From Ylistrum balloti (taxonomy: Eukaryota), in NCBI RefSeq assembly GCF_031769215.1, contig NW_026782003.1, positions 3,224,001 to 3,288,000 on the forward strand: a DNA stretch of 64,000 nt, in the 5' to 3' direction. Positions 3,039-61,125 of this stretch are shown here, in pieces. Numbering within the stretch: position 1 is the first letter of the stretch; each line of letters opens with the position of its first letter. The notes below the pieces were generated by a model. It was not told the origin of the DNA, searched no databases, and was given only the letters and a program-made list of their open reading frames with translations. The position numbers and the translations under genes were made by a program.

Positions 3039-3189
3039 NNNNNNNNNNNNNNNNNNNNNNNNNNNNNNNNNNNNNNNNNNNNNNNNNNNNNNNNNNNNNN
3101 NNNNNNNNNNNNNNNNNNNNNNNNNNNNNNNNNNNNNNNNNNNNNNNNNNNNNNNNNNNNNNNNNNNNNNNNNNNNNNNNNNNNNNNNN
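3039..3189. other. Assembly gap (N run)
   Basis: 151 N. Confidence 1.
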
Positions 3190-27070: not shown

Positions 27071-28434
27071 TTTATATCCCTCCGAAGTTGTCAAAAACTT
27101 TATGGTGGTCTGTATTGCAACATATATTTTAATGGCATGCATTATATCGAAATACTCTAATGGGCTTTTAGACACTCTAGAAGTAAGTAAATATTTATGT
27201 GGCTATTTAGAAAAACTCCAGTCGATTACTACACATTTCCATGGTATGTTTTATCAATATTTTATTTAAAAAGGTAATATTCTGTAGATGTAGCTTTTAA
27301 GTAATATAGTCTTATAAAGAGAAAATCCTGAAACCTCCTTCGGGAGGGCGATATCGACATTGCATACAGAGGTCAATGACACTAGGATTAATCTTTACCC
27401 AAGGCCATCACTCTTCCCTCAATTATGTATGTGATATATCGTATTGTTGATTCAAGCCTTATCTGAAGACACAGATGATCACCCAATATTATTAGTAATG
27501 ATGTATGGTGATTGGAATGTATACATATCCATGAAATATCGTTTGATGTTTTTGTTCCGAACTTGACAATTACAAAACTCTATCGTGAATGATATTTTGT
27601 TTCTGTTTAATGGTGCTAAAACAAATACTGTGTCCGTGTCTCACACATCAAATGACGACATTCTATCACACAAGCTAATAATTGTAATTGCAAGAAGAAT
27701 TTAGCAAAATTTACAAGTTTGATATATGTTTTATCTCAACTTAATCTTACTTGTCCAATTATACATACCGTGTAAAGCTATGTGTACTAAATGAAACTAT
27801 CGATTATTGATAAGATTAATCAAAACTAATAATAACACCACATACCGCTTGAGACTGCAAAGACACGCAAATAAATAGCAAATTTTAATACAGTATAGGT
27901 ACATGCAGTGAACGCAAAGGTTGTACATAATACACAAAGTGAATGACGGTTTTCCATACAAATATGATGTTATGTACAGTGGACCCAAAGATTCTACGAA
28001 AGACACACAAGAGAATTTCACTTTTTCATACATATTTATACTTAGATACAGAACAGCCAAAAAATATGAAAACTGCATTATTCAATAAATGTCTTAATTG
28101 TCCTATATTTGACAGTTCTGAAACAACATCAAGTACATGTGTATATTATGAACCTTGAAGGATTACGGGAACGTGTGTATGCAGTATACACATTATGCTT
28201 CTTAACACTTACACAATATTACTACATTTTCTGGATGTAAAGAATATAAAATGCAAATGTACTTTAATGAATGTGTAACTGGTAAATTCACATGATAGCA
28301 GGTGTGTGAGTAAACACAAAATAGATACTATCAAAATAATATTGAATACCTAATATGGTACAACCATCAGTAAACATTTAGGCAATGTAAATAATTGTTT
28401 CGAACACTAACTAATTCTTGTTTTATTTCCACAG

Positions 28435-28566
28435 GTATCCTAAACCCCAGTCAAACCTCCGTACATGACCTCATTGACGACCTCCTGATTCGATTGGGAA
28501 CAAACATCAGTATCACTTATATCAACACAACCGTCAGGGGCGATAATCTTGATCAATACCAAAACG
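28435..28566 (+). CDS. iGluR exon: start of ATD (GILNPSQTSVHD...DQYQN), phase 1-1
   Basis: Acceptor ttttatttccacag|G, donor AACG|gtaagt, 132 nt open; joins in frame to the next exon. Confidence 0.8.
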
Positions 28567-37500: not shown

Positions 37501-40500
37501 CATTTGCACACCTGCTTCTGCATTTACTGTTCATGGTGAAACGTTCGCCACCGTTTGACTTTTATCCAATATGACTAACATTTTGTTAAAAATGAAGCTT
37601 ATCCATCCAAAATTTCATACCAGGGGAAAAATATACAGGAGGGAATACAATTCTTGTCCGAATATTTTACCGCCTCCGAAATTTATAACAATGCTCATTG
37701 TCTCTTGTTTAATTTGACATCTGTTTACTGTAACTAATGGTTACTGACCTAATTTTCCACAGAACGTATTAGGTGTTTTAACCATGTCACCTACCAGCGT
37801 TACAGTCATATAGGCAGATAGCAACTTGATGTATTAACTATAAAATGGCTTGTTGTCTTTTGTCACGCGATTTCTGAAGTTACCGTCGTAATTTATTGCT
37901 GCGATGCGGTAATGAATGTGTCTGTGTTCTGACATTGTGTAGGCAACTGTTGTGCTTGACCTGCGTGTGCTTAGTTTTAATTGAATTGAACTAAAANNNN
38001 NNNNNNNNNNNNNNNNNNNNNNNNNNNNNNNNNNNNNNNNNNNNNNNNNNNNNNNNNNNNNNNNNNNNNNNNNNNNNNNNNNNNNNNNNNNNNNNNNNNN
38101 NNNNNNNNNNNNNNNNNNNNNNNNNNNNNNNNNNNNNNNNNNNNNNNNNNNNNNNNNNNNNNNNNNNNNNNNNNNNGTGTGAAAAAACACAGAGCGTTGG
38201 TAATACTTTTAAGTAAATGTAAATTCTGGAAATATATATATATATATAAATAACTGAAACACACGGTTGTCCACTTATAAAATAACCGTAATAATAAATG
38301 TGTTGTATTATTGTATAATGTTCTTTTTACTCTTTGATTTATCAGGTGTTTAAGATGTTGGTAATATTTTCAACTTAATGAAAAATTCTGAAAACGAAAT
38401 ATGAAATATAATTGAAACGAAAGGACGCCCACCTTTAACAACTGCTATCGTAAATGTGTTGTAATATTGTTTAATATTCTTTTTTCCAGGCATTGTATTT
38501 AAGTTTACTTTCCCGTCCAAATACATGGCTGGTTGTAACCATGGTAAGTAACTACTAAATTATCAGGCTTTTCTACATAAAGTCCTCGTTTGGAAGTACA
38601 CTATAATTTTGCTAAATGTCTTCATCGAATAGATTTCATCAGATTGAGTGGACATTCATGCATGTCTTTTGTCGTATTAATTATTGAATCATCTTAAAAA
38701 GATTATACAGATGCTGGAATTTTATATTCTGTACTAATTTCCACATTGAATGGATGTGCTTTGCTTTTCAATAATTATCCTAACTATTCCAAAACAGATT
38801 ACCAACACACACTTAATACCACTTTTATTTCTACATCAATCCAGCATGTTGATCTGTTGGTTGATTTTCTATCATTATAGGACAAGAAACTAAACTTTCG
38901 CTGTATGAAGGTGATTCATTTTAGGCTGTAATAAAATATCTAAAGGAAAACAACGATCGGTCTAAATATTCATCAATCATCTTGAACTCGTTTATGAGAC
39001 AGCAAAATGGTACATGTACAATGCACAAGTAAGCAATACAGACAATGTCAAAATGCTGAAAGAGATTCAAACAATTCAATGTATAGTTCGGATTCTTGAT
39101 TGAAGTATTACTCAATCGCCTTACATTCCGCTATGCTAACTTAAACGAATCTAGGTAAGAAACATCATCAAATATAGATATAATGTTATTAAGGATATAT
39201 AAAAAGACAATTATGCCAAATACAAACAAAATATTCAATAAACTATACAGCAATTAATTAATGCAAAACCTTTGAATGAGGAACAAAACTGAAAAATCTT
39301 AATCATCAAAGAGTTTTTTTATTCTCAAAATGATGAAATGAGTACGGTCAGCATCTCGGTCAATATGGAGGAATATACGCGTTGCTAATAGGTCAATTGC
39401 AATATGTGTTACTTAACATAATGTTACCAAGGTATACACTGACCCCCTGGAGATCGATTCATGTGAAAGCAGTAACGCATAACAGCCGCGTTTATACATG
39501 ATAGCTTTGATTTACTGTATCGTTTCTTCACAGCTGACCGAAGGGATGAGTAGTGAATTATTTACCTTTATAAATCATAATGAGGCATACATTGATTTAA
39601 CTAATTCACTCATTACTTGATAGATATACAGATAAACCGACTCGGTAAAACTCGACCAACTTAACAAGTCACCCAGATAAATACTGCTTTCATTAATCTA
39701 AATTGCATCTTAATTCAATCATTTTCATTATTTTCCCTCAGATTATTTTGAATGTATCGTGTAGGACTTCAGTTACCTATATACTTTTTAAGAAATATAC
39801 TTAACATCACAATTCCCTCTATATTCCACGAAAAAGTATTGGATTTACAATGTATAAGGCAAGAATTTTCAGGTAACTAATTGGCGAGACTTGTTCGATT
39901 CCATCACCTATCGCGTCTCATATTCATTTCTTATTGTTTCTGACTTCTGACCTAATTTTCTTAATCCATATATACGGCTTTGGTTATACAAAATGACCAT
40001 CTAATCCGGATCGTCGGTTGTAGGCCGCTGTGATAAAAGCTTTTTCTTCAACTGTAAATAGGTGGTGCTTGAAATGTACTGCAATGGTAATCCCCCTTCA
40101 TTTTGATATCTTCTGCCCGGTTCTAGGCGTGGTAATCCCTGCCGATAAATTGTTATTGTATTCCAACCACAACATCTACTCCAGACGATCTATATTAGAA
40201 CAATCTAACGCTCGTTTATTTCAAATGAAATGACAAACCTGAACCGCTTCAGCAACATTATATAGACTCATGCCATGGTGTTAAGCTTTGATCTTTTGAA
40301 AACCTATAGCTGTTAATGCATTTTCTGAGACACTTAATGATATTACCCAATGTCCACTGGCATGACGCATAAAGTAATTTCCGGTTTCTCTGTCGGTGAA
40401 CTTTGGAAGTAAATCGGTCTCACTTTTAAAATTAATAGTAAAACGCCCGGAATGGAATTGTGGGGATAGAGGTTTTCCGAAATCGATCATAAGCTTACAA

Positions 40501-43500
40501 CCTAATGTTCGTTTAAAAGTCTTTTATTTCAGAATGAAATCTACGTATTAATATAAAGTTATGAAGGGTTTTTAGTAGGAAAATCGGCGACGACTGAAAT
40601 TAAATGAATAACGTTGATNNNNNNNNNNNNNNNNNNNNNNNNNNNNNNNNNNNNNNNNNNNNNNNNNNNNNNNNNNNNNNNNNNNNNNNNNNNNNNNNNN
40701 NNNNNNNNNNNNNNNNNNNNNNNNNNNNNNNNNNNNNNNNNNNNNNNNNNNNNNNNNNNNNNNNNNNNNNNNNNNNNNNNNNNNNNNNNNNNNNNNNNNN
40801 NNNNNNGCAAGTTCAGATACCTGAAAACCATTTAGATGAAGTTAGATGACCATCGACGTCCAGAGATAAACCTCAGTAGTCCCCAAGGGAAAATATAAAC
40901 TGTCTTTTGTAATTGCATGTACAAAAATAAAATAAATCCTTTCATTTAAGCACATATGTTACCTCAATATATTCTGAATCTTCATTTCTGAAGAACTCCA
41001 ACGTTAGAAGTCGACTGAGTACTCGAGATTATCAACAATGCAAGAGAGCATATAACTCGCCACTGGCAATTTGTTGCTTTACACTTAAGAGTAGCAATAT
41101 GTTTCCATAACTATCAGATAATTGCTCTTCATGGTAAATCCCCTGACAGCCGATATAATACCCAAAGATAACAGATAGAAATATTCGTCATGTATCAATT
41201 TACTATGATGCTAAACCAAGTGATGTTCGAGTCACATAACATACTAATTAATTTGATTTTCTTATCTTCAAGACATGATGTATGATCTTAACTTCCTTAT
41301 CTTTCTGCCGGTTCCCAACATCCCACGTATTCATGATGATTAATTTGCCTTTGGGTTACATTTTGATAGTTTTTATCAACCAGAATGGTACCATGCAAGA
41401 CATGAATTAAATTAGCACATTTTGCCTCAATATTTACACATTTAACACGCAGAATTTGTCAGCATACTCTCCCGTATCATTATCTATGATAGGGCGTGTT
41501 CCGATGTAGGTGATCTCTTTTGAGTTTAGCTTACGCCTTTCTAGACGGAGAAGATATCATTATCGTGACCCCTATTTCACCAATCTTATGGTAAAAACTG
41601 TTCCCCTGATTTTCGCATAGTCTGGAAGAGTACATGATAGGGCAGATGCCACACTGTACCGTAGGCAAACTTGATGTTTATGTGGTAATATTTGATGGAA
41701 AGACCCAAGGTTATGCTTTCTAAAAAGTTTATAAAAGTAATTCGGAAAAAGGATGACATAGAATCAATAGGCTATGTTCCAGTTTCCACTTTTCTGTCTT
41801 CGGTATGTAACAATACATTGTAGTCACTACTTCTTGTTATCTTACACGGGTCTGTGCCGTGAATTGATAGACTATCTCCCTTGCATTAAAGCAGGACAGA
41901 GAAATCTCTATCCGAGAAGGATATTAACGACTGTCCAAACCGAGGCTTTGCCGAGGGTTTGGGTGTTGGGAATCTCCTCCTAGAGAAGATCCTTTTTCTT
42001 CCCCTTATCTCAAACATACCATAAATAGAGTACCGAGACAAATATAGTATGTCAAATATGGAAACAAAATCAGGCAAATAACAACTTATGTTTTTACCGA
42101 TGTGTAATCTATATTATCCACTATACAAAGGCAATAGCAATGATAAATCATTTCCATAATGCATTTGATCGGCATAAACAAAAATGTTCAGTTATGTCTT
42201 AACATCATATGTAATTTTTCTTACACTAATAGTCTCTCATGTCTCAAATTAACAACTTCCGGTTTAGCACGTGGTTATGTTCTATACCCTGGCAAGATAG
42301 AAATATTTTACTCTTGGTTACGCTTCATGAAATGTTGACGTTATCAATTGGCGACATAGTTACGCTTCATGAATTGATGACGTTATCAATTGGCGACATG
42401 GTTACGCTCCATGGAATGATGATGCTATCATATTTTGAGTAACGTTATATTACATGCTATCTGTTAAAGCCTTAGGGCGAATCTTAAGCAGGTAAAACTG
42501 GTAATAAATATCTGAATTATGGAAGAAAACGATATCTTTAATTGATTTATTCCTAATGCGTAATGTTTTCGCATATCCCAGAGGTAAATGCATTGATTAA
42601 GAAACTGATGTTTACTCATAATTCATTTAAACGTCTTAAATTGTTAACCACACTATAGAATTTTGGCTTGATTTACACATATTTCTAGTGGCGCTGTTTG
42701 ATTTAATTGAATTATACCTTGCGACGCGTTCGCTTCTCGTGTCCACGTAATTTTATTTCTACCCATCCGATACGTTAATTATGAATATCATTATAACTTT
42801 GTTACAGATGTAAATATTGCATAGTAGATATAGGAATACATATAAAGTATATCAATATATATATGCCCTCTGTGATCTATAAGACAACTGTTGAATGACG
42901 GCGACAGAAGCAATTGTTCGGTCTGGAGTTATACGTTGCACACTGAACCCACTATTTTAAAAGCTATTTTACATTTAGACAGCACGAGTTGTAATTGCCT
43001 ATTTACTATCTGAAATAAAAGTCAATTTCCACTTTGCATGCGTTGTGAAATATATTTTTACGCGTACTTGTCAGCGGGTTCCAATGCATATCAAGTTAGT
43101 TTATATATAGATATATATATTGTTTCATGTCATTATAGTTTTTGAGAATGTATGCTATCTAGTTTGTGCATTCATATATTATTTAGCTTTTGGAAAGCGT
43201 GTCACCAAAGGAAATGCTATTTTATCAGGTAGAATATATGATGTATTTGCAATATGCCTCATGATAACACAGCAGTGCGTCAAATAAAACTCATATCACC
43301 ACACAGATACAAAAACATAGCAATGAAATCTTCTGGTTAAAACAAAAAAAAAAACTTTCAATACCTGTTAATTGTGTCTGGGATTTCCATTTAACGTCAC
43401 GAGTGTCGTAAAATACGGCTTGTCAGTTTTATGACATTTGTACCAGTTAGATAGATTCTACACAATTATAAAAGTGATGACTAAAGAAGCGAAAAGAAAT

Positions 43501-46500
43501 TCACAGGAAAAAAAATAAAAGCAGGCATCGCTAATTTATCACTGTTCAATTGTCTGAAATGTTTCTTAGTGTGATTTTACCAGGTACCATTACCTGTCTC
43601 CATATTTAACGGAGTGATGGTTGTTTATGGAACTTACAAGTGAATATATATGATGCAAATTTACATTTCGTTTCTCCTAGCCATCATAATTTACACATTT
43701 AGAGTTGTTCGTGAATGGGACAAAATGGCTTTGGAGATGGTAACTTTGAAAGCTGATTACTAATAAACCGGAAATACGACTGTGTTGACTGTAAAATCTA
43801 TATATTCAAATCGGCTAAAACAAACTCGATTCAGCATTAGATAAATACCAACTCTAACATCTAACGTATTCTCTGTCATATTGTTTTTTTGTTCTTACTT
43901 TCCTATTTTGATTTTCAGGGAGTGGACGACATAGCCTTAGATAGGTACATAGATTCCAGAGCGAACATGACATCCCTGTCTCTTATGCTAGACACCAATA
44001 CTAGCTTTTGTGCCTTGACCGGTTCGAACTGGACATTGAACAACGCTGTATATCACGACTCTTTAAAGATTTATCAGGCTATGCTTGACTTTAACAACGG
44101 ATCTGGTAGATTCCAAATGCTCAAGACGTTACGACAGGTAACTGTGAACTCCGTGTCGTGGGTGTTGCATGTTGTTAATACATTAGCCTTAGCTCAATAA
44201 TTGTGTTTCTGTGAAACCTATATCCCCACAACAGTTATAGTATTGACAAGTTAAATATATATTGCACTTTTTGTAATCATACATACAGATATTTACATCA
44301 ATGACCAGTATTATATGACATACGCTCTATACAACACATATAGGGTAAGTTATCTTATTGAGATAATAGATATTGATGACTGGGAAACATCTTAATATAT
44401 TGTGATTATATTAGATAATTATTTAACTTGAGTTATTATGTAATCGTATTTTTAAACGTTTGAACTCTAAGTCTAGGTTGACAGAAGTAATTGAAATATT
44501 GTAGATATTATGAAATGTGTGGTAAAAGAAGGTCAATTATATTGTAGTTACAAGCAGGTGAAATGCAGACTTGCTGTAGTTATGGACAGTTCATATTGTA
44601 GCTATACTCAGGCTGTCATTGAGAATGTTAATCAAATATAAGTTGTTAACTGAAAGCTGTGACAAAGGATCTCTGAGATTTGCGGATTATTGGAAGAAAA
44701 CTATTAAACGTGTTCAAATGGTGCAAAAAGAAAAGATTTGGATCTTAAATCTCCAATCCTTAGAGGATATGTATGAAAGGAGAAATACTTGTACCTTTCT
44801 GAAATCCTCGGAAGAATTTTAACAATAATTAACCAGCATTTTACAGCTGTTTCATATTTCTAGGACCCGTCAAAGATGCTAAGTGCCTAAATTGTTGAAA
44901 CATAAGAGACGACAGAGGAGGATCAAACGTGGTTGAAATAAGGGTTAAAGACCTGATAGGGAGGACGTGCACAAACTCCAGAATTCAATAATTTTCCCAT
45001 TTAATATTCTTCATTGAATACGTTTAAGTGATCGTCAAGTACATGTGTATAATTTGAACTGTCACTAGATTTTTGTGTGTCCATTAAACCATTTTATCAT
45101 CTCTCCTGTCGAATTTTTCTAATGAAAGGAATTAAATACAATTTATAAGACTGATGTTGTCAGAAAACCTTGACCGTGGTTATTCATCTCACACTTTCAT
45201 GTCGCCCCCACTTAAAGTCGGTATTCGCGCATCCTCTTCGACCTTGGTTAGTAGCTAATGCTAGAGTTTCTCTTTACCGATATTTGTATTTCACATGTTC
45301 AGAATGGCGAATCTGGATCTTTCCTCGAGAATGAAGTGAGATAATGTTTTTAATCCTTTATTATTTTGTTTCATATCTACTTTACTTGAACTATGTAATA
45401 TCTTTATCTGACCGTGTCATTTGTATTTGCACATGGTCAGATCCAGCCTTTCTGCTTGTTAGTTGTATGCACCTATCACCCTTCTATATTTGTTCTACAT
45501 TGTTTAGTTGTCATTCAATTATCATATCTGAGTATTCTTCACATGACCCGTAAATGGATTTTTCAATTCACTCGTACATATATAAATTCTCATCACTAAG
45601 ATTTCATTCACATCATCTTTTTGGCGTTCTTCTTTGTGCATCTATAGACATGTATCATTGTAATAGTATTGCAGCAGTTACCGAAACGTCTGAATATCAT
45701 TTTTATTCAATATTCATTGTTAAAAAAAAAAAAAAAAAAAACTGCATCGAACACATTAAGCATTTCTTGAAAAGAAGCATTTTCATTTCAGTGGTCTGAT
45801 TGGCGTAACATTTGAAATAGCAATATATCAGATTTGTAAAAATGATGTTTTTGCATGTATTATCCGTGTTATTAATATTTACGGAGTTCCCAAGGTGTAT
45901 TTTCTGGATCCATTATATCTTATGAAAACTAAAAAAGAGTTGAAAAGAAAATGATTGACCACATGGGGTTTAAGGTGGGCACAGATTTGAGTTATCGATA
46001 TATACTGCCTTACTCCTTACTGACATGAAAACAACAAGAAAATATTGTGAAACGAATTAAAGCCCAAACGCAAATTCAATAAAACCAAGGCAAAATATCA
46101 ACAAAAGAAAGAATTACACAGAAACTCTTGAAAAAAGTACAAGCAGATTAAGACCAGATGTTTCGGAAGAGTACGCGTCCTCTGCTTTATCGACGACAGT
46201 CGCTATTTAAATCTTGATTCTAAGTAAGCAAAATCGCGTTCTCAAATGAGAACAAGGAATTCAACTGCGGAACCAACTGGCAAACTAGTTGAGATCAACA
46301 TTACCACTTCAATTAACCGTATTCAACGCCTGGAAAACTATTAACCTCATTATTACAACAGCTTCAAATAGACAAAATTTGCTGAATCGTATACTACTGA
46401 ATCATATTCACATTCAGATTATCAAACGGATGAAAACGTGGAATGCATGTAACTTTGGAAGGAAACGAGCATCCAAGTAGAGACTCATATATATGAAGTG

Positions 46501-49500
46501 GCATTTGAACTTACTTAATTCAACATTTAGTCAGGTTAAACTGTCATCGCTTTGCTTTCAAGGACAAGTGCTCTATGAGTCAAAAGATAAGCCTCTAAAC
46601 AGGAATTGTTAGAAGGACCTTATCATATGATTTCATATGAATAACTAACTAGAAAAGAATGACATTTATGCCGAAGTTGACAGTTAGCAAAGATAGGAAA
46701 TGTCAGTTTTCTCGATTTTACTAGAGGTATGGTTTTGCTTTGATATCCAAAGCTTGATAACCTACATCAATGTTTGCTCTTGCGATTTTTTTTTCCACTT
46801 TTGCCTGTCTAAAAATGAAGTTGCATTGGATTCAAAGTCTACTCGTGCATGTCATGTTTTCCTTGAAATCTTGAAGTAGCATGGATCGGTAGAGCTTTGG
46901 TAGACATACAGAGTCATAGACAATGTAGACACCATTGAAATATCATTGTTAATTACACTCAATCACTGTATATTTACTGTTTCTTTGAAAGCTTGAAGCA
47001 GCATTGATTTACAGAGTTTTTTCCTAGACATACACACTCACAGACACTGTAGGCATATCATCGTCCAAACACCATTGTAGTTTACTCTCACAGTATATCA
47101 GGTTGAGTCATACTTACCAATATCTAAAAAACAACATTAAACACATCTAAATCTTGGTTTACCTCATCCCATGTTTCCTATATACATGGGAAAACCGCAT
47201 GTGCTTTGTATACAAATATCAAATTCATTACATATTCTATAGTGTATTTTCCCCCATATATTAATCGTTGTATAATATGTTATGTCAACAAACATAGATA
47301 TATCTACTTAAACTTCCTGCATTAAACCAATTTACACAAGAACGATTTGTTTGACTGCAATTTACATATGATTTTATAGATCAAATTTTATTAGATCTAA
47401 ACGCCATAACGTTAAATGTCCCCATTAATATTTACATCAATACAAAACTCGCTTTAAAAATAAACACACCTAAATCAACTTTGTAAAGAGAACAAATTAT
47501 GTTTCCTGATTTAAATCTTATTTTTTATCAACAGAGCTTCCATGGCGTATATTGTTATTCTACTCGTTTTCAGATTACCATTGATGGGTGCACAGGTCAT
47601 GTGGAGTTCACAAAGGCGGGGAACAGAAAAGAGACGTTTCTTAGAATGTCTTCTCTTGCAACTCTGAAAAATGGCACAGTAAGTTTTGAAAATGAAATTT
47701 CTATGCAAATCATGGTATCAATTTCGGAAACTTTAATCGACTTCGGATAAATGTATACATCAAGGTATGTCTACCATGAGAATTGAAGTTGTAAACGCCG
47801 ATTATAAAGATAAAATAAAGAATATAAAATTGTCAGGGTTTTAACTCGAAGTTTTACGCTTTTTCATGTTGAGCTTCAGCTAGATTAAAACTTTTTGACA
47901 CCTTTTTTATTTGTGGAGACAAATGACACTGATTTCCAGGTAAGCGGTGTTGCTTGAAACCTTGTTTTTTATTTATTTTTCACATATAGACATTCAGATT
48001 CCTGAATGCGATTATCTTATTTTAGGTATTTATTGAAATATTTTTGTCCGTTTATAAGTCACTTGAGCGTATTCGTATTTGTTGACAGTAATGTTATGTT
48101 TTTTTGTATCTTGCGCACAAGAGTAAATGTGTTCAGGTAACTAGTGTAATTGTCATTCCCTAACACTGTTTATTTTTTAAAAAGTATACCCTTCTAGAGT
48201 TCGTATGTTTGGTCCACGAATTGCCACGTGTTATGGTGCACTTCCTTTGCGCTAGTGTTGTAGCATGGTTCACTTCCGGTAAAGCCCGGTCAAGAATTGC
48301 TCCTTTTCGTGAGAATGTAGCATGATTTACATCCTGGACACAACTGGTTATCGTATTTAAAACACAAAGCTATGTGACGTATTTGCAAATGTACCACCCA
48401 AAGCACCCATTGTAAAAATAATGTATTCTTTCCTGTAGCAAACGTCTTTGATGAAAATGAATCTGTTGTATTATATATATGTATTATTAGAAATTAAAGT
48501 TACATATTAGAAATGTAAAATGCACATTGTTCCAATAGGAATACAAGAGAAATAAGAAGAAAACAGAAAAAATATAATCCTTGACACAAATCTGTGAAAT
48601 ACTCATACCTAATTTCTATGAAGTTTTGTCGTGTTAATTTTTCAGTCATCTTCGTTTTATACTCCTCTCCTCCTTATACACCAATAGATTAATAAAACAT
48701 TTTAGATAATTTACTTTTTTTCATTTTTGCATTTGCTCATATTCAAAAGTACAAAAATGGAGTATTTTGCAAAATTAAGACAAAAAAAAAGCAAAAAAAA
48801 AAAAAAACGCATCCCTCATTTCGTTGTATGCCGATGTTGTCAAATATCGAGAGTGAGAGTCAAATGATGGATTTGAATGGATTATTGTATTTAAAACACA
48901 TATCTTACAAACTTTTATATTCTTTAAGTAATATAAGCAATATTTTATGTATCTTCAGAAATAGTACTGTAAATCTGAAAAAAAAAAAAAAAAAATGAAG
49001 AAAGCTTTGAATGAGGATGAACGAGAAAATCTTTTTATAAACCAATTGCAATATAAAATAGTTAAACACAAAAGAACAACAAAAATCAATATGCCAATAA
49101 TTTCCCTTAATAATCAGTGTAAGACGTATTTATGTTTTAATTTAGATGAAGCAGTTATTCAAATATTAGATAATCGGTTTGAGTATTTGATATTAATCAA
49201 CTAAATCAATTATGTCATGAAATAAATTATAGCGAAGGTTTCCCAATATGACACGTATATATCACAGTCTGAAGAAGAAAATGCATAGAGAATTGCAAGT
49301 CCTAGCATTAAGTTTCTCATGTATAACCAAATACAATTTCTCGTGTGCTACCATATAGAATTTCTCATGGAATGGCAAATATCATTTGTAAAATTTTCAA
49401 TGTCTTAGTAAATTTCATTCACGATGAACACATCAATGTTAGTTTTAAGATTTTTTTTAAGAAACGAGTATTTTTTGCCAAAACGTATGGTTGTCTTTAT

Positions 49501-52500
49501 CCTCTGTTATCTTAACTAAAATTTCCTTTTCTCAGTTAAAGGTACATATAATTCAAAATGAAGAATTTGTTTTTTTAATTGTCTTCTTTCGTCATCACTC
49601 CTTCGTGATAAAGCGAATCTATATATCATATTGTATCATTTTATTGATCGAATCGTTATGATTATATTCAGCTGTCAGAGCTGGAACTGTGAATTGCTCT
49701 CTTTTCTCTTTTCTTTATCCCATTTTTAGTCTCTTTCTGTGTTCCCCTCGTTCTCAATTTACCAACTTACAGGGATAAAATATCATATGCTATTTTGTAA
49801 ATTTTATTTCTTTTAATAAACAATATTTAAAAATACATTAAGCTGCATTAAAATCGATAATAACTGGGCATTAAGCACTCATAAAAGGCAACTGCTACAA
49901 GTGCCAATAAAACGGAAAGTCATGAGTATTTTGTCCTTTATGATTGTTTAGTTGGAAAAGTAAAATTTCACATAACACCAGGGTATTTTTATATTGATAC
50001 CGATGTATCTTTAATTCTATATTTGTGTTATATGAAATGACGCATCAACTGATTTTAATATGATTGACTTTTACACCTGTAACATTGTTGTTTCCTGACC
50101 CCTTTTAATTGACAATTTCCGATCTTGTCTAAACATCATATGAAGTTGTTAGTATCTAATATTAACTCCTATTAGTTCTTTAATATACTTTAGTCGTATA
50201 ATTAGTAGATGTTCATACTACTATATATATATCTTTATCTCTGAAAAGGCTGTGGGTCGCTTTTATTTTAAAGACTACTCCTGCAGAAGGCACACATTAT
50301 CTGGACTTTTTCTAATATGTCTTTTTTTCTTTAACTTTTTTTTAATGATTATTCCATGACAAAGCAATTTGCAATACGTGACGCTACCAAAGATTCAGCA
50401 TTACGGGTACCAAACCTTAGATACCTGAAAAATACAAAATTGGATCAAGTGCGGCTCAACATTTAAATATAGACAAGTTTATTTGACGACTTTGGATATT
50501 CCGTCTAGTCGTCCAGTTGTCTGTCAGGATTTCAAAGTTAAGCCATTAGCATCACTGACGAGTCCGAAATGACGACGCAGGTGTATGAGGCAGTTTAAGT
50601 CATTATTTGGCTCTGAGTATCTAGCTTTAAATTTGCATTGAAAGGTGTAGTTCATTAATGTGTCTTTTGTACAATCTCAATTTTTTTCTTCCTTCTGTAA
50701 AGATTTCCATACATTCTCGTAAATGCTAGTCGTTTGTTATGAAAAATAGCAAGTTCAGCACTTTTCCATTGTTCAAAACATGAAAGAATACTTGTTTTGT
50801 CGCATAATTTTCTGTGGTTTCAATCTTCGGTATCGTCACGTTATGAAATGGTCTTTATTATTGATAAAATGATCACGAATAAATATGAATGTAATCACTA
50901 TAAAATATATTCGAAAATAGAAGTGATACACAGTAAACACTATTTCGTACTATACTTCTCATAAATCTGTCAAGCTGTCAATATATCCAGGTCAAATGTA
51001 TATGGTGCCTCTCTCATGATTGCAGAATGTGGTGGGCTATGTTGTAGTTTGCTAGGAATGTACACGCCATACGTACATGTAGTTAGTGTAGTTTAAATGC
51101 TTTTCATGTCTATATATATAGACTCTGAATATCAAACATGTGCTCATTTTCGTGCTAATTTGAATATGGCTGGACATATATTTATACGGACATTATGACT
51201 GTTGATGAATGTATTTTTTCGTTTATCATAACTGATCTAAGTTTCAGTAAACAAAAAGACAGATTATGGTAATGGATAATTGACATAAAAAAACAAAATT
51301 ACTAACACACACGGAAATGAGCAACTGTGATCCATATCTCTATAATGTGTGTATTTGTAAGTGAGACTCTAGAAGGCAAAAGAAATATTCATATGTATTG
51401 CATATTATTTACTCCATAACTTAACGAAGCAATTCATTACAATGTTTTTTAATATTCCATTTTTAATCTGAATACATTTGAAGTATTTCCTTTTTGGTAT
51501 GTAACTTTTGTTCTAAAAAAATCTTAACTGATATTTTCGAATAGCCGATTATTTTCAAGGGGATGATATTTTCGCTGATGTTCTGGTACATAACAACATT
51601 GTAAACATTTGATATGTTGCAGAGTATGACATATGCAAAATGATCAGTGATATTAAATATAGTTTTAAAAAGCCTCATAGCGGAGTTGCTACATGAAACA
51701 GCTCACTAAAGACTATTCGCATACAATAATATTTAAATCTCTCAGAATAATTATAGTATGCAATAATATTTTCTTTTACATGTAAATGCAAGATAAAGAG
51801 ATATGAGCTATAATGCTCGGGCAAGCAAAAACAACGGCTTCTTGGCATTAAGTTAATGGTATTACGTTATATCCTTTTTGCGATTTACAAAACAATACTT
51901 CAATGCTAGATCAAGGTCATTAATGGTTGTTTTTACTTAATACTTGATATCAGGGCAAAATTCTCGAAAACCTGACGATTTTATATCTACAAGACCGCGA
52001 AATTTCAATATCTTGAATTAGTTTTTTTCAAATTTCGAAAAAGTCAATAAAATTTGTATCCACTTAAGTAGCCGGCTATATGATTGTATTATTATCTATC
52101 ATAAATCTACCTGGAGTCTCACTTCTCTTTGTATGTCTGCGAAGGTTTCTACGCCTGTGTTATGTATACTGATGCTTCGTTTCTGTTTTCTTTTCTTCAA
52201 ACATTTACAGAGTGCTTTATTTCAGTCAGGAACATGGAGGAGTCTTAAGGATACCATGCAACAGCGGATTGAACCGTCTAGGTCATACGACAGCGTTATG
52301 AGAATGGGCGATGACATATTTGGCAACGAACCACTACGAATTACAACTATCATCGTAAGTGCCTTATTGAATTTGTGTTTTATCTTTAGAGATATTATTA
52401 TTAATTAAACATTTGTTTTGGTCATATTTTTAGGTAACATCAAGGTAGTAAAAACATAACCCTAATGTCACTGTACTACATTGTACGAAGGCTTTCAGAG

Positions 52501-55500: not shown

Positions 55501-58500
55501 ACGTCAGACAAAACGACGCAATGCTCACCTACCTGTAGCATAGTGTTATACAGTTTTAATCACGATTTGTTGTATAAATTCGTGGGATGCCCCGAAGACT
55601 TCTGATATCCCTCAGTGACATTCTCGTCTAGATTTTGACTGAAATTTCCTCACACGCCTCTCAAACTTCAAAATTTAGCCTTTAGCATCGCCGATGAGTC
55701 AGATAAGGATATCATCGTTTGTTCTATTGCATTTAACTCTTAATTTCAATTTAAATATGCTATTCACATGCGTATCCTCTGTATAATCTTTATTTATCTG
55801 TTCATGTGTCGTTGTTTTTACTTTTTAAATATCTGCTGTGTTTCTGTTTTCTTTCTTTTTTGCATTTCTATGTCCATTCTCGGTTCCTGTTTCGGTTGAA
55901 GTCTTTAAGTCTATTTATTATCATCATTATAGAGCTCCTCTCTATTGGTTGTCTACTGCCCCTTACCTTCATATCTTCACTGATCATGTTATATATCCAT
56001 TGAACAAATATATCGACCATTGTGTTTGTTATCGGGGAAGAGATATGTTGATGTAACTTAAACTGAAGCAAAGGACATCAGCAACAACTGATGAACCTCT
56101 CATATCCGCTATCGGGTTTGTAAACATACCAACTATTTTTTACTTGCGAGCGAAATGTCCAACAAGCTGAGGAACAATATGAGACACTCATTATCTTCAA
56201 GTGTACATGTAGAGACACAAAGGGTGTTTCAATATAATGTGTACACACACATAGTCTTATCAGTAACAATATATTATAAACCTTATTAGAATACCAATTT
56301 GTTCCTAAAACTAGCATCTCTTTATAAACATTCTTCTTGATACAGATATATATCTATGAATATATAGATATTGTAATAAAAGCTGAGTCTTATATTGGTT
56401 ATAAAGATATTATTTACATTGGACTTCCTGTTTTAGTCCTTAAATCATCATACTATCTATATATCGTACTAGATATAACGTTAGTGTATTAGATGCAGAA
56501 ATATCCATTACATGTAATGTGCGATACAGTCGTAAAACTAAATGTGTCATCACCAAAAGAACTTGTCTGTTTGTGACGTTTTACAGCTCATACGTCACGA
56601 TATGGAAAACAATTGGCATTACTTTATTGCTAATTTGATTTTATCTTCCCCTTTAGGAGCCTCCATTCATCCAATGGAAGAATGACACTCCCCTGTCACA
56701 CCCTATATACAACCTGAACGACCATCTGGAGGGCTTCTGTGTCAGTGTTCTACAAGAAATGGCGAAACTATTGGATTTTACGTACAATCTGACATTAGTA
56801 CCTGATGGCAAATTTGGGAGTTTAAAGGCTCACGGATGGACAGGAATGGTCAGAGTTTTGTATGAAAAGGTATTGAAACCTAATAATGCATAATTATTAA
56901 ATACAGATACAGAAAATCTTTAGTTAGATTCACCATTAAAACAAACTCAAGAATATCGACACCATCCACAACAACAGCAATAAAAATGAAACTCATGGTA
57001 GTGATTCTTGAAATATATCATGGAAAAGGTATATATATCAAATATCATATTGTTATTTCTGTTAAGACATTCTTTTTGTTTGTCTAGCTTTACTCTACAA
57101 GAATAAATATTCGAAATTAAGCGATTAATATTCTGTAAGAAGAAAGGTATGTTGACATTTATCTATGTTAGGTACACATTAGTTTGTAGTCCATAAAATA
57201 ATGTGTAATATGGTGAATATAATGATTTAAATGTGATTGATATTTTTTTCAGGAAGCCGATATTGCTCTTGCACCTTTCCAAATTACACCCAAGCGGTCA
57301 ATGGCTGTGGATTTTACTAAGCCGTTCATGACAAAAGGTACCAGCGTTGTTGTCAAAAAACCAGACAGGAGTGTATCACCATTTCAGTTTTTATCCCCTC
57401 TGTCAAAATATGTGTGGATAGCAATATTTGTGTGTTTCGTGACTACAGCCTTAGTGCTGTTTGCGACTAGTCGTGTGAACAACGACAAAAAACCAAAATT
57501 TATGCACAATATGAGAGAAAGTTTTTGGTATATCTGGGGAACCATCTTACGTGGAAATTTGACAGGTTCACCCACTGGGATATCCAGTAGAATTGTAAGT
57601 GCCGCTTGGTGGTTTTTCTCTTTAATTATTATTTCTATATATACTGCTAATTTAGCTGCATTTTTAACTATTTCTAATGCACATATACCTATAGACTCAG
57701 CTGCTGACTTAGCAGATCAGACAGATTTTGACTATGGTACTGTTGATGGCAGTCAAATAGAAAACTTCTTTAAACATACAAATATATCGCATTATGCAAA
57801 GATGTGGGCACATATGCACTTGCTCTCGAAGGAATCTATGGTAAGAAGAGTTGAAAATGGATTCGATCGAGTTCTAAGAGAGAAATATGCCTTCCTGTGG
57901 GACTCGCCGGTAGTGCGGCATCATATTGCCAACGACTGTGGTCTAACAGAAATAGGGAGCCCATTCGATTTGAAAGGATATGGAATAGCTACGCAAAAGG
58001 ATTCCATTTACACTGAAAAGCTGTCTTGGGCAACATTAAAGCTGAATGATGATGGCATTCTATATCGTTTGGAAGGAAAGTAAGTATAACGAAAAGAAAC
58101 TAAGTACACCCACGTGTATTCACACGTGTCAACGTGACTATTCCCTAATCTGTATCTATGTATCAAATTACCCCTTATAATATTTTAATTTGTTTCAAAC
58201 CAGATTATACACTTCTGTAGGGACGAGATGTGATGAATGATCGTACAAGGATGTCAGGTGTGCGTAATAGGCAGAGGTTTAAACCTTACCGTTGAAGGTA
58301 TAGAATGTAGGGCCATATAACACTTTTAAAGGTGCTAATATACTTAGAGTCAGGCTATGGAAAGTAGGGACACAGAACACTTTCAAAGGTGCGGATAAGC
58401 TAACAGTTAGGCTATGGAAAGTAGGGACATATACTATTTTCAGGTGCGAATATACTTACACTCAGGTTACGGAAGGTAAGAACATAAACTACATTCAGGT

Positions 58501-61125
58501 GCGAATATACTTACAGGTAATCCAAGATGTCGTCAAGGTCAGTCAAACATGGTTTCCTGGTTTATTTTTGCATAACTTGTCTAGAAAGCAGATGCAATTT
58601 TCAATCGGTTATAGACGCTTTCTTGACACTTAAAAATTGAATCAGAAGGCTGTGAAATCATTAACTCAACTCTCTTTTGTCCAATTTGAATTTTCCTCAT
58701 TTGGGTTTGAAAATTTGTGCGAATACTATCACTGACGATTCCTATAAAGACGAAATAGGGTTATTATTCATTAAAGCGTTTAAAAAGATCTTTAAAGAAA
58801 GTGCCCAAGATGGTAGGACCAAAATCAGATAATTAGACGATTCTTTACCTGAGTGTCTGTAAGACAATAAGTGAAAAATTTCTTAATACATATTTTTTGT
58901 ATGTATTAGAAGTTTTATACTAAACATCGGATAACATCTTTAAATGTACACTAGAAATAAGTAATTATATACGCACGAGCCGTGAACTTGAAATTTAAAA
59001 TTCTATCAATATACCTTAATCCTTATTCCAAATAAACTACTGTCAATTATTATCTTATACATGAAAAAAGACACACATTTGAATAGGGCCTTTCGAAATA
59101 TATTTAAAGTAAGACACAGTAAAGACGAACATTGAATTAAACTGCAGAAAGCAGTCTGTCTTGTCCTTCTAGGACTCATCAGTATTATATGCTATTGTTG
59201 TATCGCATTGTCGTTCTAAATCGCGATTCCTGTTATGTTACGATAAACAAGATTCAAGCACTATGTAGGTGTAGCATTGAATATATTCTGTCCTTGCGTG
59301 TAGCATCTAGAGCCACGGTTCTGGCCTAGAATTTCAAGTTATATACCGTAAGCAGATGTGTAGTAAGCGGATGATCAACCTCATGTAACTTAGATTGAAG
59401 GTTTGTGTCAATATTGCTTATCTCTTTCCGAGTTCGTATGCTAGCTGTGCTGATTCTTTGCCGTTGTGTTCAATATCAGCATCCATCGCAGGTTATCAAT
59501 GTCCGCCGTTTGCAACACAGATATTCTGTCTGAGAGAGTTAATTCAAGATGAAAGATACAATCTATTAATCTCATTTAAGTTTCCGTTAACTTAATAAAA
59601 CAGAACTAATCTTGAAGACGATAGAAACAATTGTGGTGAATAATGGTATATGTTTCGATGGGTTCTTATGCAATCAGATTTCGTCTCATTAAAGTGGAGG
59701 CAGAAAAATGTCACGTGTGGTAGTGCTAGATTTTTTTAATGTAGTTCTATCAATAAAAGACAAAGATCAATCAACATGGTGATGTTCAAGTCCGGAATTC
59801 TCAATAACTCAAGCTAAGACCTAGGTTTTTTGGTCATTTCGCAGTAATTTTATTTTCCTTCCAACCTCATCTCATGTAAGGTTATGGGCAATTATCTAAT
59901 TTCATAAAACCCTTGAAATCTCTCTTCCTATTCTCTTTCGCACAACGTCATGGTCTATTTTTCATTTCATATAACATTTGTCATCTTTACAAACTGACTA
60001 ACTCTATCGTTAACTGAAAGCTAATTTGGACAATGCAACACAGTAATTTGTTTATTAGAAATACGTCGATTTTAATATGGTATTGTTATGGCATTGAAAT
60101 CGTGGATGGTGTATTGTCTCTCTCATACAAGGTTAGAAAATTATTATTGAAACAATTCTTTGTTTGTGACAACATACTCATCATATCTCATATTTCGAAA
60201 TTTTTGTTCAAGACTTTGTCGACTGACTGCTTAATTTAACAGAGATGTTGAACAATCAGGAAAGATTACTATTATGAGTAACTTAACATTTCACTTGTAT
60301 AATAATTTTCTAATTGACTATAAGCGTTTTAAGTCATATATTTGAAAATACCCAGTGTGAGCAAGGGGATTTACTATGCTCCAACAGGTGGTGGCGTCGA
60401 CCAAATTGCCCCGATCCCCGTCAGAGTGCCAAGAGCAAAGCCATTGAAATCAATGTTGCTTCCGGAATGTTTATTGTACTTCTTGGAGGCATTGTCTTGT
60501 CCATAGTTGTGTTCCTGGGAGAATTGCTATACTACAGGGCAAGGGCAAAAAGTAAAAAGGTAGGTAAAAATAAGATTAAGTCTATCATGTCTAGATTGTT
60601 TTCAAATGACAGAAGCTCAGCATGATGCTCAATATTGATTTTTAGACGACTTTGGTTTTCTTGTTAGTCTGCCTAATCGTTAGGTCTGCTCTACGTTGCC
60701 ATAATATGAGCTCAGGTGTGATGAATAAGACGGAAAAGTGATAGTCTCTCATTTGCAGCACATGCGATCTTTTCTACTTTTGCAATCCACCATTTCGTTT
60801 TTTTCCTTTTTTTTTTATCAAATATTGGCCAGGAATTTATTGACTCTTTTACGTTAAATCAGGTTTCGGATGAGTTTAACCACGTTTAATTTGAATCTTG
60901 CTTTATGTAACAAAATACAAGTAGTCAATTATAACACAAATCTGTAAATTTTCATTTTGTACTTTGATTTAGCCCATCGAGGAGCGTGAAGAAAACAATT
61001 TTCACAGTTCCGGTAACCATGTTGGAAATAACGCTGAAACTAGCAGTAAGGACGATGAGGTACGTACAGTTCTGTCGCGTACATTAAGCATTGGCGAGAA
61101 CTGTGTACACAATCGATGGGAGTAG
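28435..61125 (+). CDS. Ionotropic glutamate receptor family subunit, non-NMDA (AMPA/kainate/delta-like) and divergent; 11 joined exons, 5' end incomplete
   Basis: Join 28435-28566, 29100-29345, 35375-35553, 38490-38543, 43919-44137, 47574-47678, 52211-52354, 56657-56869, 57253-58079, 60388-60559, 60973-61125. All introns are GT..AG and the phases match (1,1,0,0,0,0,0,0,2,0). Hallmark motifs present: PDGKFG, DIALAPFQITPKR, VDFTKPFM, WWFFSLIIISIYTANLAAFLT, KGYGIA, KWW..C and an M4 helix. The subfamily cannot be assigned without a phylogeny, so no symbol is given. Confidence 0.93.
29100..29345 (+). CDS. iGluR exon: ATD (ADEIVKTLKISALIG...FNWLRVGILYDNEA), phase 1-1
   Basis: Acceptor gtattgcag|, donor GCTG|gtaagt, 246 nt. 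FNWLRVGILYD matches the ATD W..v.ilYD motif. Confidence 0.92.
30425..30480 (+). mobile_element. Family B copy with a heavily decayed hammerhead motif
   Basis: ttaggtttcaaaattaaggcctttagcgtca CTGACGG matches the flank of the 50.5 kb and 55.7 kb copies. Confidence 0.5.
31403..31500 (-). ncRNA. Degenerate hammerhead motif, family B
   Basis: Minus strand: aatca CTGACGA GTT CTAGGAT GAC GAAA C AGCT G CA ctgg. The cleavage triplet is GCA rather than GTA. The flank aaatttgaattttcctca is shared with the 58.7 kb copy. Confidence 0.72.
35375..35553 (+). CDS. iGluR exon: ATD (ASQVVINLIG...NAEIILTQ), phase 1-0
   Basis: Acceptor tctatttcag|, donor CAA|gtaagt, 179 nt. RNALKELRDNYYEKFVILCS resembles the ATD lower-lobe segment. 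Confidence 0.9.
35878..36000 (+). mobile_element. Family A copy
   Basis: gatgaagcagaagatgataactctttcggaacacctggtctc...catattttgccttatttttattg aligns closely with the reverse complement of 46065-46205. Confidence 0.75.
36052..36155 (-). mobile_element. Family A copy, inverted relative to the copy about 50 bp upstream
   Basis: The reverse complement contains aagcagaagatg, ggagtc and tttggccctatgtttatggaatttg. Confidence 0.55.
37997..38176. other. Assembly gap (N run), intronic
   Basis: 180 N. Confidence 1.
38490..38543 (+). CDS. iGluR exon: ATD (ALYLSLLSRPNTWLVVTM), phase 0-0; absent from the ORF track
   Basis: Acceptor ttcttttttccag|, donor ATG|gtaagt, 54 nt. It fills the A..lgm......yii.sl segment between its neighbours. 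Confidence 0.85.
40619..40806. other. Assembly gap (N run), intronic
   Basis: 188 N. Confidence 1.
41888..41965. mobile_element. Possible MITE or DNA-transposon fragment
   Basis: GC-richer island gacagagaaatctctatccgag...cgaggctttgccgagggt resembles a motif I recall from mollusc interspersed repeats. No partner TIR was found. Confidence 0.25.
42316..42432. repeat. 42-bp tandem repeat, about 2.7 copies
   Basis: gttacgcttcatgaa.tg.tgacgttatcaattggcgacat starts at 42317, 42359 and 42401. Confidence 0.92.
43919..44137 (+). CDS. iGluR exon: ATD (GVDDIALDRYIDSRANMTSLSL...MLKTLRQ), phase 0-0
   Basis: Acceptor ttgattttcag|, donor CAG|gtaact, 219 nt open. Confidence 0.9.
46065..46205 (-). mobile_element. 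Family A copy (best preserved)
   Basis: Reverse complement: gataaagcagaggacgcgtactcttccgaaacatctggtc...gatattttgccttggttttattgaatttg. Confidence 0.75.
47574..47678 (+). CDS. iGluR exon: ATD (ITIDGCTGHVEFTKAGNR...LKNGT), phase 0-0
   Basis: Acceptor ctcgttttcag|, donor ACA|gtaagt, 105 nt; carries the G.TG...F...G.R motif. Confidence 0.92.
50522..50595 (+). ncRNA. Degenerate hammerhead motif, family B
   Basis: gcatca CTGACGA GTC CGAAAT GAC GACG C AGGT G TA tgagg. The GAAA box is mutated; stem I catca/tgagg is nearly intact. Confidence 0.68.
52211..52354 (+). CDS. iGluR exon: end of ATD and start of S1 (SALFQSGTW...PLRITTII), phase 0-0
   Basis: Acceptor acatttacag| after a pyrimidine tract, with an alternative in-frame acceptor at 52226; donor ATC|gtaagt. 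Contains the GTW and LRITTI motifs. Confidence 0.88.
53431..53478. repeat. 24-bp tandem duplication
   Basis: gtacggtaataggaacg(a/g)attgtt at 53431 and 53455. Confidence 0.9.
55640..55720 (+). mobile_element. Family B copy, 5' half of hammerhead motif only
   Basis: tgaaatttcctca...cttcaaaatttagcctttagcatcg CCGATGA GTC; no GAAA box follows. Confidence 0.55.
56657..56869 (+). CDS. iGluR exon: S1 (EPPFIQ...EGFCVSVL...PDGKFG...WTGMVRVLYEK), phase 0-0; absent from the ORF track
   Basis: Acceptor cttcccctttag|, donor AAG|gtattg, 213 nt; classic S1 motifs. Confidence 0.95.
57253..58079 (+). CDS. iGluR core exon: end of S1, M1, M2 pore loop, M3 and most of S2, phase 0-2
   Basis: Acceptor tatttttttcag|GAA GCC GAT, donor AA|gtaagt, 827 nt. 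It extends the 57301-58083 ORF 16 codons upstream. Confidence 0.97.
58255..58517. repeat. 55-57-bp minisatellite, about 4-5 copies, intronic
   Basis: The ggtgc anchor recurs at 58331, 58388, 58443 and 58498; shared aggctatggaaagtagggaca and gaatatactta. Confidence 0.85.
58682..58768 (+). ncRNA. Degenerate hammerhead motif, family B
   Basis: caatttgaattttcctca...ctatca CTGACGA TTC CTATAAA GAC GAAA T AGGG TTA. G10.1 is changed to T and stem III is decayed. Confidence 0.6.
59147..59190 (-). ncRNA. Degenerate hammerhead motif, family B
   Basis: Minus strand: CTGATGA GTCC TAGAA GGAC AAGA C AGACT G. The first box and the 4-bp stem II are perfect; GAAA is changed to AAGA. Confidence 0.6.
60388..60559 (+). 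CDS. iGluR exon: end of S2 and M4 (KWWRRPNCPD...GMFIVLLGGIVLSIVVFLGELLYY...KSKK), phase 2-0
   Basis: Acceptor atgctccaacag|G completes the AA+G Lys codon; donor AAG|gtaggt; contains the hydrophobic M4 helix. Confidence 0.93.
60973..61125 (+). CDS. iGluR probable last coding exon: C-tail (PIEEREENN...KDDEVRTVLSRTLSIGENCVHNRWE*)
   Basis: Acceptor actttgatttag|, open in phase 0 to TAG at 61123-61125. An internal donor-like GAG|gtacgt at 61059/61060 makes the true end uncertain. Confidence 0.65.
   Translation, partial: PIEEREENNFHSSGNHVGNNAETSSKDDEVRTVLSRTLSIGENCVHNRWE

Follow-up and report, generated by a model that had tools for sequence, protein, structure and literature searches.

The arginine (Arg) at the Q/R site of the pore loop is the textbook example of a residue that sets how permeable fast excitatory receptors are to Ca2+, and its making is the textbook case of essential RNA editing. 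In GluA2(R), GluK1(R) and GluK2(R) it occupies the apex of the M2 loop, and paralogues that carry a glutamine (Q) there are encoded in the same genome. Here we analyze a stretch of 64,000 nucleotides from the scallop Ylistrum balloti (NCBI RefSeq assembly GCF_031769215.1, contig NW_026782003.1, positions 3,224,001 to 3,288,000; "the window", whose numbering we use throughout). It contains an ionotropic glutamate receptor (iGluR) gene that has an Arg at the homologous position; as in the vertebrate case, genes of this type and Q-bearing paralogues occur together in one genome. Sequence comparison identifies this gene as the scallop orthologue of Aplysia californica GluR6, neither AMPA nor kainate in class, and its pore Arg is written in the DNA of every orthologue that we could collect.

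The functional consequences of such an Arg have been described in several systems. In GluA2 and GluK2, an Arg at the Q/R site eliminates the conductance for Ca2+ and the block by polyamines, and reduces conductance (PMC13520880, PMC12226733), and the aspartate found four residues downstream (+4) helps polyamine block (PMC12226733). Homomers in which every subunit has the Arg show poor conduction or poor expression, both for GluA2 and for a placozoan receptor (PMC13520880, PMC12226733). A pore Arg can also come without editing. The GluA2 of fishes and early-branching vertebrates is cited in PMC13520880 (from Kung 2001) as having one encoded in the genome, and an AMPA subunit of the acoel Hofstenia has a genomic Arg at +1, such that the heteromer shows a linear, Ca2+-insensitive current-voltage (I-V) relation, and an R-to-Q replacement reverses this (PMC13520880). 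The 2026 paper that reported the acoel receptor called its chromosomal pore Arg "remarkable", and asked whether such solutions had evolved repeatedly (PMC13520880). In GluN3, a glycine-binding subunit, the tip is G-R (R-R in human NR3B), and receptors made of NR1 and NR3 do not let Ca2+ through (PMC2974739).

The closest described relative, Aplysia GluR6 (NP_001191542.1 / AAP41208.1), is among the iGluRs that Greer et al. 2017 (PMC5225553) list as "orphan". Its cDNA comes from the nervous system, it has been quantified in all ganglia, and its level declines with age in sensory neurons (PMC5225553, PMC6532900). The Aplysia papers that we could search say nothing of the pore Arg: PMC5225553 contains neither the word "arginine" nor the word "editing". 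The GluR6 accessions are absent from the papers in the literature that we searched.

The channel of the scallop protein is encoded by one main exon. When this exon is compared using phmmer to all chains of the Protein Data Bank (PDB), the best matches are GluK2 (E 2e-61) and GluA2, and there is no NMDA chain among the best 60. The alignment to GluK2 has no gaps from M1 to M3. It pairs the translation of 57520-57573 (+), SFWYIWGTILRGNLTGSP, with SFWFGVGALMQQGSELMP, and puts the scallop Arg against the first Q of MQQG, which is the Q/R site. The codon for this Q586-equivalent residue is CGT, at 57550-57552 (+); the translation extended to 57520-57582 (+) reads SFWYIWGTILRGNLTGSPTGI. The same register is obtained against AMPA-like sequences that end in MQQGCDISP, and the anchors are identical on both sides: SFW..G upstream, and SP, SxRIV, WWFF and YTANLAAFLT downstream. 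Counted from the Q/R site, the residues of the scallop pore tip from 0 to +4 are R, G, N, L and T.

An AlphaFold2 model of the protein of the main exon, built from a 92-row alignment (predicted local distance difference test score, pLDDT, 83.6), gives the following elements, all of them on the + strand.

57406..57480, +, M1 transmembrane helix (model helix 52-76; Pfam Lig_chan)
57511..57549, +, M2 re-entrant pore helix, MRESFWYIWGTIL (model helix 87-99; aligned to the GluK2 M2 helix)
57550..57579, +, pore-loop tip and selectivity-filter coil, R-G-N-L-T-G-S-P-T-G (model coil 100-109)
57580..57675, +, M3 helix with the gate motif S-I-YTANLAAFLT (model helix 110-141)

In this model, the Arg is residue 100, the first after the pore helix according to DSSP. 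Compared using Foldseek to structures of AMPA and kainate receptors that span the ligand-binding domain (LBD) and the transmembrane domain, the model has template modelling (TM) scores of 0.7-0.8 over about 277 columns; a look-alike search of the ESM Atlas returned only generic iGluR clusters. The preliminary description of this locus, made by reading the letters alone, had placed an Arg encoded by CGT at the Q/R site with G, N and T at +1, +2 and +4, had noted the lack of the +4 acid, and had argued that CGT is not the product of editing a Gln codon. Translation, alignment and model agree with all of it, and related species encode the Arg as CGA or AGA. CGT has no A, so editing is impossible at the scallop codon. 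An ADAR-edited Q/R-site subunit is accordingly rejected, the genomic codon being CGT and not CAG, and CGA or AGA in relatives. Chance is not applicable here in its usual sense, because what we are looking at is a single codon inside a strongly conserved and clearly homologous motif.

The gate motif YTANLAAFLT is invariant in the clade alignment. The Ile just before it (57637-57639, in S-I-YTANLAAF) is Val in a few members, and the position is Ser (S-S-YTANLAAF) in nearly all other iGluRs; this Ile/Val substitution is observed in the Arg clade only.

Is the Arg a peculiarity of one scallop? A word search using the exon reports 18 single-exon relatives at 63-76% identity, and all 18 have the Arg; a second tier at 45-49% identity reads L-L-Q-G-N/S-T-D instead. 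The full-length or named members of the clade were gathered by a search of a representative library, in which the best full-length member is Aplysia californica GluR6 (NP_001191542.1), followed by a search with the channel region of that protein. The Arg is found in 44 out of 44. The gastropods represented are Aplysia, three Elysia, Plakobranchus, Physella, Babylonia, Nucella, Biomphalaria, Littorina, Gigantopelta, three Haliotis, Lottia, Patella, Batillaria and Lymnaea, and the bivalves are Argopecten, Ostrea, Crassostrea, Saccostrea, two Mytilus, Tegillarca, Mercenaria, Ruditapes, Mya, Dreissena, Potamilus and Sinanodonta. The remaining members are the chiton Liolophura and two cephalopods, Octopus vulgaris and UniProt A0A0L8I6N7, which by its accession range we take to be O. 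bimaculoides. The +4 residue is not acidic in any of the 44, and the remainder of the tip depends on the lineage, as follows.

Pteriomorph bivalves: R-G-N-L
Gastropods and cephalopods: R-G-S-L
Heteroconch and unionid bivalves: R-A/S-D/E-L
Chiton: R-G-G-T

In pteriomorph bivalves, gastropods and cephalopods there is no acidic residue anywhere in the tip. The heteroconch and unionid forms are R-A-D-L, R-A-E-L and R-S-D-L (P0282, P0286, P0288-P0294, P0298, P0302; L001-L004). The check on molluscan orthologues that had been proposed for the preliminary R-G-N motif thus has a split outcome: its Arg is universal, in the full-length and the exon-level sets alike, and the N at +2 is kept in pteriomorph bivalves only. 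Nor do the G at +1 and the N at +2 set the Arg subunit apart, since Q-bearing paralogues read Q-G-N-T-D. The Arg codon is CGT in the window and CGA or AGA in other lineages, and the codon of the Q paralogues is CAA. Because the codon varies in this way, it is the Arg residue that selection holds, and not the inertia of one codon. We regard the identity, position and conservation of the pore Arg as very nearly certain.

In order to place the gene, we inferred two IQ-TREE trees (LG+C20) from alignments from which the pore-tip columns had been removed. The Arg clade is monophyletic in both, with a support of 100 in the Shimodaira-Hasegawa-like approximate likelihood ratio test (SH-aLRT), and Aplysia GluR6 falls inside. 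Its stem is long (0.51 and 0.71 substitutions per site), its internal branching matches the mollusc phylogeny, and there is a gap in scores around it: clade members have at least 57% identity, and the next matches at most 48%. As judged from these trees, the clade is mollusc-wide, mostly single-copy, and part of a spiralian-specific branch of the AMPA/kainate/delta/phi (AKDF) group. That spiralian-only group (support 99) also contains the mollusc GluR8-like proteins (Q), nemertean proteins (Q or G) and annelid proteins (G), and the AMPA+kainate group is separate from the Arg clade (support 99).

Membership in the AMPA class was considered and rejected, the gene being outside that clade (99) with a tip that reads L-R-G-N-L-T-G-S-P and not M-Q-Q-G-C-D-I-S-P. 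The kainate class was rejected as well; the gene is outside the kainate clade in both trees, and the kainate tip is M-Q-Q-G-S-[DE]. A divergent chemosensory ionotropic receptor (IR) was the other candidate. It fails because an amino-terminal domain (ATD) is present, as the Pfam ANF_receptor match shows, so that this is not a divergent, ATD-less IR; the equivalent of Arg485 is retained too. IR25a and IR8a do not appear among the named matches, and the trees were built without references for them. The automatic NCBI names of clade proteins ("kainate 1/2/3-like", "glutamate receptor U1-like": P0281, P0266-P0268, P0270, P0272-P0275, P0300) are contradicted by the tree; P0281, from Argopecten irradians, is named "kainate 2-like isoform X4".

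Published classifications differ in the names that they use. The scallop genome paper describes Phi subclasses and a mollusc-only "Zeta" class, sister to Phi (PMC8437780), and a 2025 Commun Biol tree includes lophotrochozoan phi and an uncharacterised AKDF "group II" (PMC12226733). That "Zeta" would fit the Arg clade is a guess on our part. The M2 motifs of the clade have zero occurrences in the supplements of Ramos-Vicente 2018 and of the 2025 Commun Biol phylogeny.

Arg at this position has arisen at least twice or three times on our trees. Inside the AMPA+kainate group there is an independent Arg clade of insects (ants and Lepidoptera) with the motif F-L-R-Q-G-S-G; the insect kainate-type proteins with Arg are P0065, P0119, P0132, P0133, P0143, P0360 and P0364. 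Two AMPA-like proteins with a genomic Arg (P0083, P0176) read M-R-Q-D-V-D, and Lys and His variants are also seen at the site among the library representatives. Some of the library entries that read M-R-Q-G may be edited cDNAs.

The nearest mollusc relatives outside the clade, at 44-48% identity, are the GluR8-like proteins (Aplysia GluR8, and the "glutamate receptor 2/4-like" proteins of Pecten maximus and Mizuhopecten). They belong to the same spiralian branch (support 99), and share G at +1 and N or S at +2. They differ at the Q/R site, which is Gln (CAA), at +4, which is Asp or Glu, and in helix F, where the motif is S-G-I/V; their tip reads Q-G-N/S-T-D/E.

Both types of gene occur together in one assembly. 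In Liolophura sinensis they are head-to-tail about 10 kb apart on CM072727.1, 30.547-30.596 Mb (L013:501-18060, L014:501-19666). In Elysia crispata, Sinanodonta and Batillaria the two types have locus tags that almost adjoin, and in Aplysia both are on one scaffold. In Haliotis, Dreissena, Mercenaria, Mya, Littorina and Biomphalaria, the longest contig has the same size for both types, so they are probably on one chromosome. From this tandem arrangement and linkage across molluscs, we infer that the pair is an old tandem duplicate, probably older than the split between chitons and conchiferans. The history that we propose is that one copy would have changed its Q/R-site Gln to Arg, for which CAA to CGA is a single A-to-G step, and that the same copy would have lost the +4 acidic residue before chitons diverged from the other molluscs. 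The Arg would then have stayed invariant, with its codon drifting among CGA, CGT and AGA.

The gene occupies 28434-61122 of the window. It is intact, comprises at least 11 exons, and encodes an iGluR with an ATD. The 861 aa Argopecten irradians protein (P0281) is collinear by tblastn with eleven + strand exons, with zero stops or frameshifts.

28434-28568, +, exon 1, ATD
29099-29350, +, exon 2, ATD (Pfam ANF_receptor on the frame 29075-29350)
35371-35553, +, exon 3, ATD
38487-38543, +, exon 4, ATD
43919-44158, +, exon 5, ATD
47571-47678, +, exon 6, ATD
52208-52354, +, exon 7, linker between ATD and S1
56657-56869, +, exon 8, S1 of the LBD (Pfam Lig_chan-Glu_bd 2e-14; AG/GT borders)
57253-58079, +, exon 9 (main exon), end of S1, M1, M2, M3 and S2 (AG 57251-57252, GT 58080-58081)
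60388-60559, +, exon 10, (K)WWRRPNCPDP, pre-M4 linker and M4 at about 60455-60535 (AG 60386-60387, GT 60560)
60973-61122, +, exon 11, C-terminal tail, P0281 residues 811-861 (acceptor site; TAG directly after 61122)

Exons 1-7 correspond to P0281 residues 40-406 (tblastn) and have splice signals. The main exon matches Pfam Lig_chan (1.3e-28) in addition to Lig_chan-Glu_bd, and is 96.7% identical to that of Argopecten P0281 and 66% to that of Aplysia GluR6 (P0121). Membership in the iGluR superfamily follows from the ANF_receptor, Lig_chan-Glu_bd and Lig_chan matches, the YTANLAAF motif, the modelled M1-M3 and the M4 exon. All the runs of N (3039-3189, 37997-38176, 40619-40806) are outside the mapped exons. 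No second iGluR is found in the 28 kb upstream or the 3 kb downstream within the window. At 325-598, far upstream of the gene, there are two long open frames that overlap; their peptides are repeated and resemble each other (…VGGNSN…CWWKQ…), pointing to a repeat, either tandem or dispersed.

For evidence of transcription, we aligned contigs from presumed-RNA runs of relatives to 56600-60700. In two runs of one relative (about 90% nucleotide identity), the contigs skip 56868-57250 with GT..AG ends and join 56869 to 57253, so the orthologue is transcribed and spliced as modelled. The loose contig ends of that relative enter the upstream (NEPLRITTII) and, after 58081, the downstream (KWWRRPNCPD) exons. 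Of the listed differences between window and contigs, 34 out of 40 are at third codon positions (binomial p = 2e-11); by this codon pattern, the gene is under purifying selection. Short high-depth contigs in the runs of all four relatives fall at 59156-59189, in the intron between the main and M4 exons, and are probably a dispersed repeat.

The ligand pocket of the scallop protein departs from the glutamate type at several positions (56657-56869, 57253-58079). GKFG has Phe for Tyr450, P-F-Q-I-T has Gln for Thr480, and the Arg485 equivalent is retained. Helix F reads S-Q-I, which gives Ser at 653 and Ile at 655, and F-L-W-D-S provides the W-D motif; S-Q-[IT] and W-D are conserved throughout the GluR6 clade. 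Applying the published rules for a glycine-type pocket (Ser at 653, a non-polar residue at 655, W-D), the sequence suggests that the pocket is not of glutamate type, and that the agonist may be glycine or another small amino acid. Since the pocket points that way, GluN3 would be the nearest functional analogue.

How does the locus compare with the known systems? Aplysia GluR6 is in the same orthogroup (SH-aLRT 100) and has the same ATD, LBD and M1-M4, the Arg at the Q/R site with no +4 acid, the S-Q-x and W-D pocket motifs, and the S-I-YTANLAAF gate; its tip reads R-G-S-L-T, versus R-G-N-L-T in the scallop. In comparison with the edited vertebrate subunits, the Arg of the scallop clade is in the DNA and so not open to regulation by editing, and the clade is outside AMPA+kainate (99), with no Q at +1, no acidic +4, and an LBD that appears not to be of glutamate type. 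Fish GluA2 and the acoel subunit have a chromosomally encoded Arg just as the molluscan clade does; those genes, however, are of AMPA class and restricted to their lineages, and the acoel Arg is at +1 and not at the Q/R site, whereas the molluscan clade is not of AMPA class, spans the phylum and, judged from the taxa that carry it, dates back to crown Mollusca. GluN3A and GluN3B combine, as here, a glycine-type pocket (Ser 653, non-polar 655, W-D) with a genomic pore-tip Arg, but they belong to another subfamily, and the Arg of rodent GluN3 is at N+1.

What would this Arg do in the channel? By analogy with the characterized receptors, its guanidinium would sit at the narrow constriction and repel divalent cations and polyamines, from which a low Ca2+ permeability, a low unitary conductance and a near-linear I-V relation would be expected; low Ca2+ permeability with a linear I-V relation is plausible on this analogy. 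The preliminary description had proposed a subunit that is Ca2+-impermeable, non-rectifying and possibly anion-permeable, or else an obligate partner, and these proposals are likewise arguments by analogy. The likeliest arrangement would be a heteromer with a Q-bearing subunit. Given the Arg analogies and the poor performance of all-Arg homomers, the likeliest role would be that of the subunit that makes heteromers Ca2+-poor and non-rectifying. For the Ca2+-excluding mechanism taken by itself, we would give even odds. The whole explanation, that is, the identity, the history, the mechanism and the ligand as described above, we put at a probability of roughly 0.6.

Several points weigh against that explanation. 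The permeation properties of the clade are pure analogy, and in GluN3B mutagenesis showed that the tip Arg is not the residue that lowers Ca2+ permeability (PMC2974739), so the analogy can fail in a different pore context. The whole tip departs from that of AMPA and kainate receptors (G-N/S-L vs. Q-G-C/S, with no +4 acid), and in heteroconch bivalves the +2 residue is acidic as well. The Asp or Glu found there in heteroconch and unionid bivalves may partly neutralise, or interact with, the Arg. The GluR8-like neighbour is the obvious candidate partner, a candidacy that comes from synteny and co-occurrence alone. The root of the trees is provisional, with amphioxus "delta-1-like" sequences on long branches. 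A sensitive tblastn search for the signal-peptide exon (P0281 residues 1-39) found nothing convincing, and the transcript evidence comes from relatives, not from the scallop's own species.

Other explanations were considered. Homomeric GluK2(R) passes Cl-, and a homomer of the scallop subunit would have four Arg and no +4 acid, with a tip free of any acidic residue in pteriomorphs, gastropods and cephalopods. Such homomers might be anion-permeable, mixed cation/anion, or of very small conductance, and the long stem of the clade suggests a functional shift that would suit them. We consider this improbable, given how all-Arg homomers of GluA2 and of the placozoan receptor behave, and given that an Asp or Glu at +2 in heteroconch and unionid orthologues is odd for an anion filter. 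Similarly improbable is a protein that is not mainly an ion channel, such as a delta-like synaptic organiser, or a chemosensory or metabotropic-type receptor, where the Arg is tolerated or shuts the pore. The pocket is not glutamate-type, the S-Q-I and W-D motifs are as in GluN1, GluN3 and GluD, and the clade was listed as "orphan" by Greer 2017, all of which would be compatible. But the gate motif YTANLAAFLT has been kept, as have M1-M4 and the length of the loop, and the Arg is invariant across Mollusca through three codons, when an unused pore would be expected to drift.

A more ambitious proposal, which we hold as tentative and rather doubtful, is that the GluR6-like and GluR8-like products of the tandem pair form joint receptors whose agonist is glycine or another small amino acid, and that their subunit ratio sets Ca2+ permeability and rectification; as a variant of it, homomers of the GluR6 type may be anion-permeable. 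At the other extreme, the Arg would have no pore meaning at all if the alignment were off by one residue or more, or if the gene were a pseudogene or an artefact of assembly. We give this almost no weight: the alignment is gapless with identical anchors and agrees with the AlphaFold2 secondary structure, the gene is intact over at least 11 exons with canonical splice sites, third-position bias and spliced transcripts in a relative, and DNA runs of the source organism contain the complete exon. The intact gene, the purifying selection, the gapless alignment and the model together refute pseudogene, artefact and misalignment.

Some of this is known already. The gene family has been in the databases since the Aplysia cDNA was deposited, and a genome-encoded pore Arg as a device is described. 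The gene is thus less unusual than the preliminary description had it, being the orthologue of the long-known Aplysia GluR6, with genomic pore Arg published elsewhere. A description of this clade's pore, with its fixed Arg, its lost +4 acid and its Q tandem paralogue, was not found in the literature by indirect searches, "Q/R" not being a term that can be queried.

The clade is a further, independent and very old case of a genomic pore Arg, fixed in every mollusc sampled, cephalopods included. In Aplysia, iGluR-dependent plasticity has been intensively studied, and the GluR6 subunit has been left unclassified. For genome annotation, it means that the NCBI "kainate 2-like" names given to clade genes are misleading. 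If the co-assembly of the tandem pair were true, molluscs would have in it a Q/R switch that is encoded in the genome and older than the split between chitons and conchiferans, and with it an independent and much older answer to the problem for which vertebrates edit GluA2.

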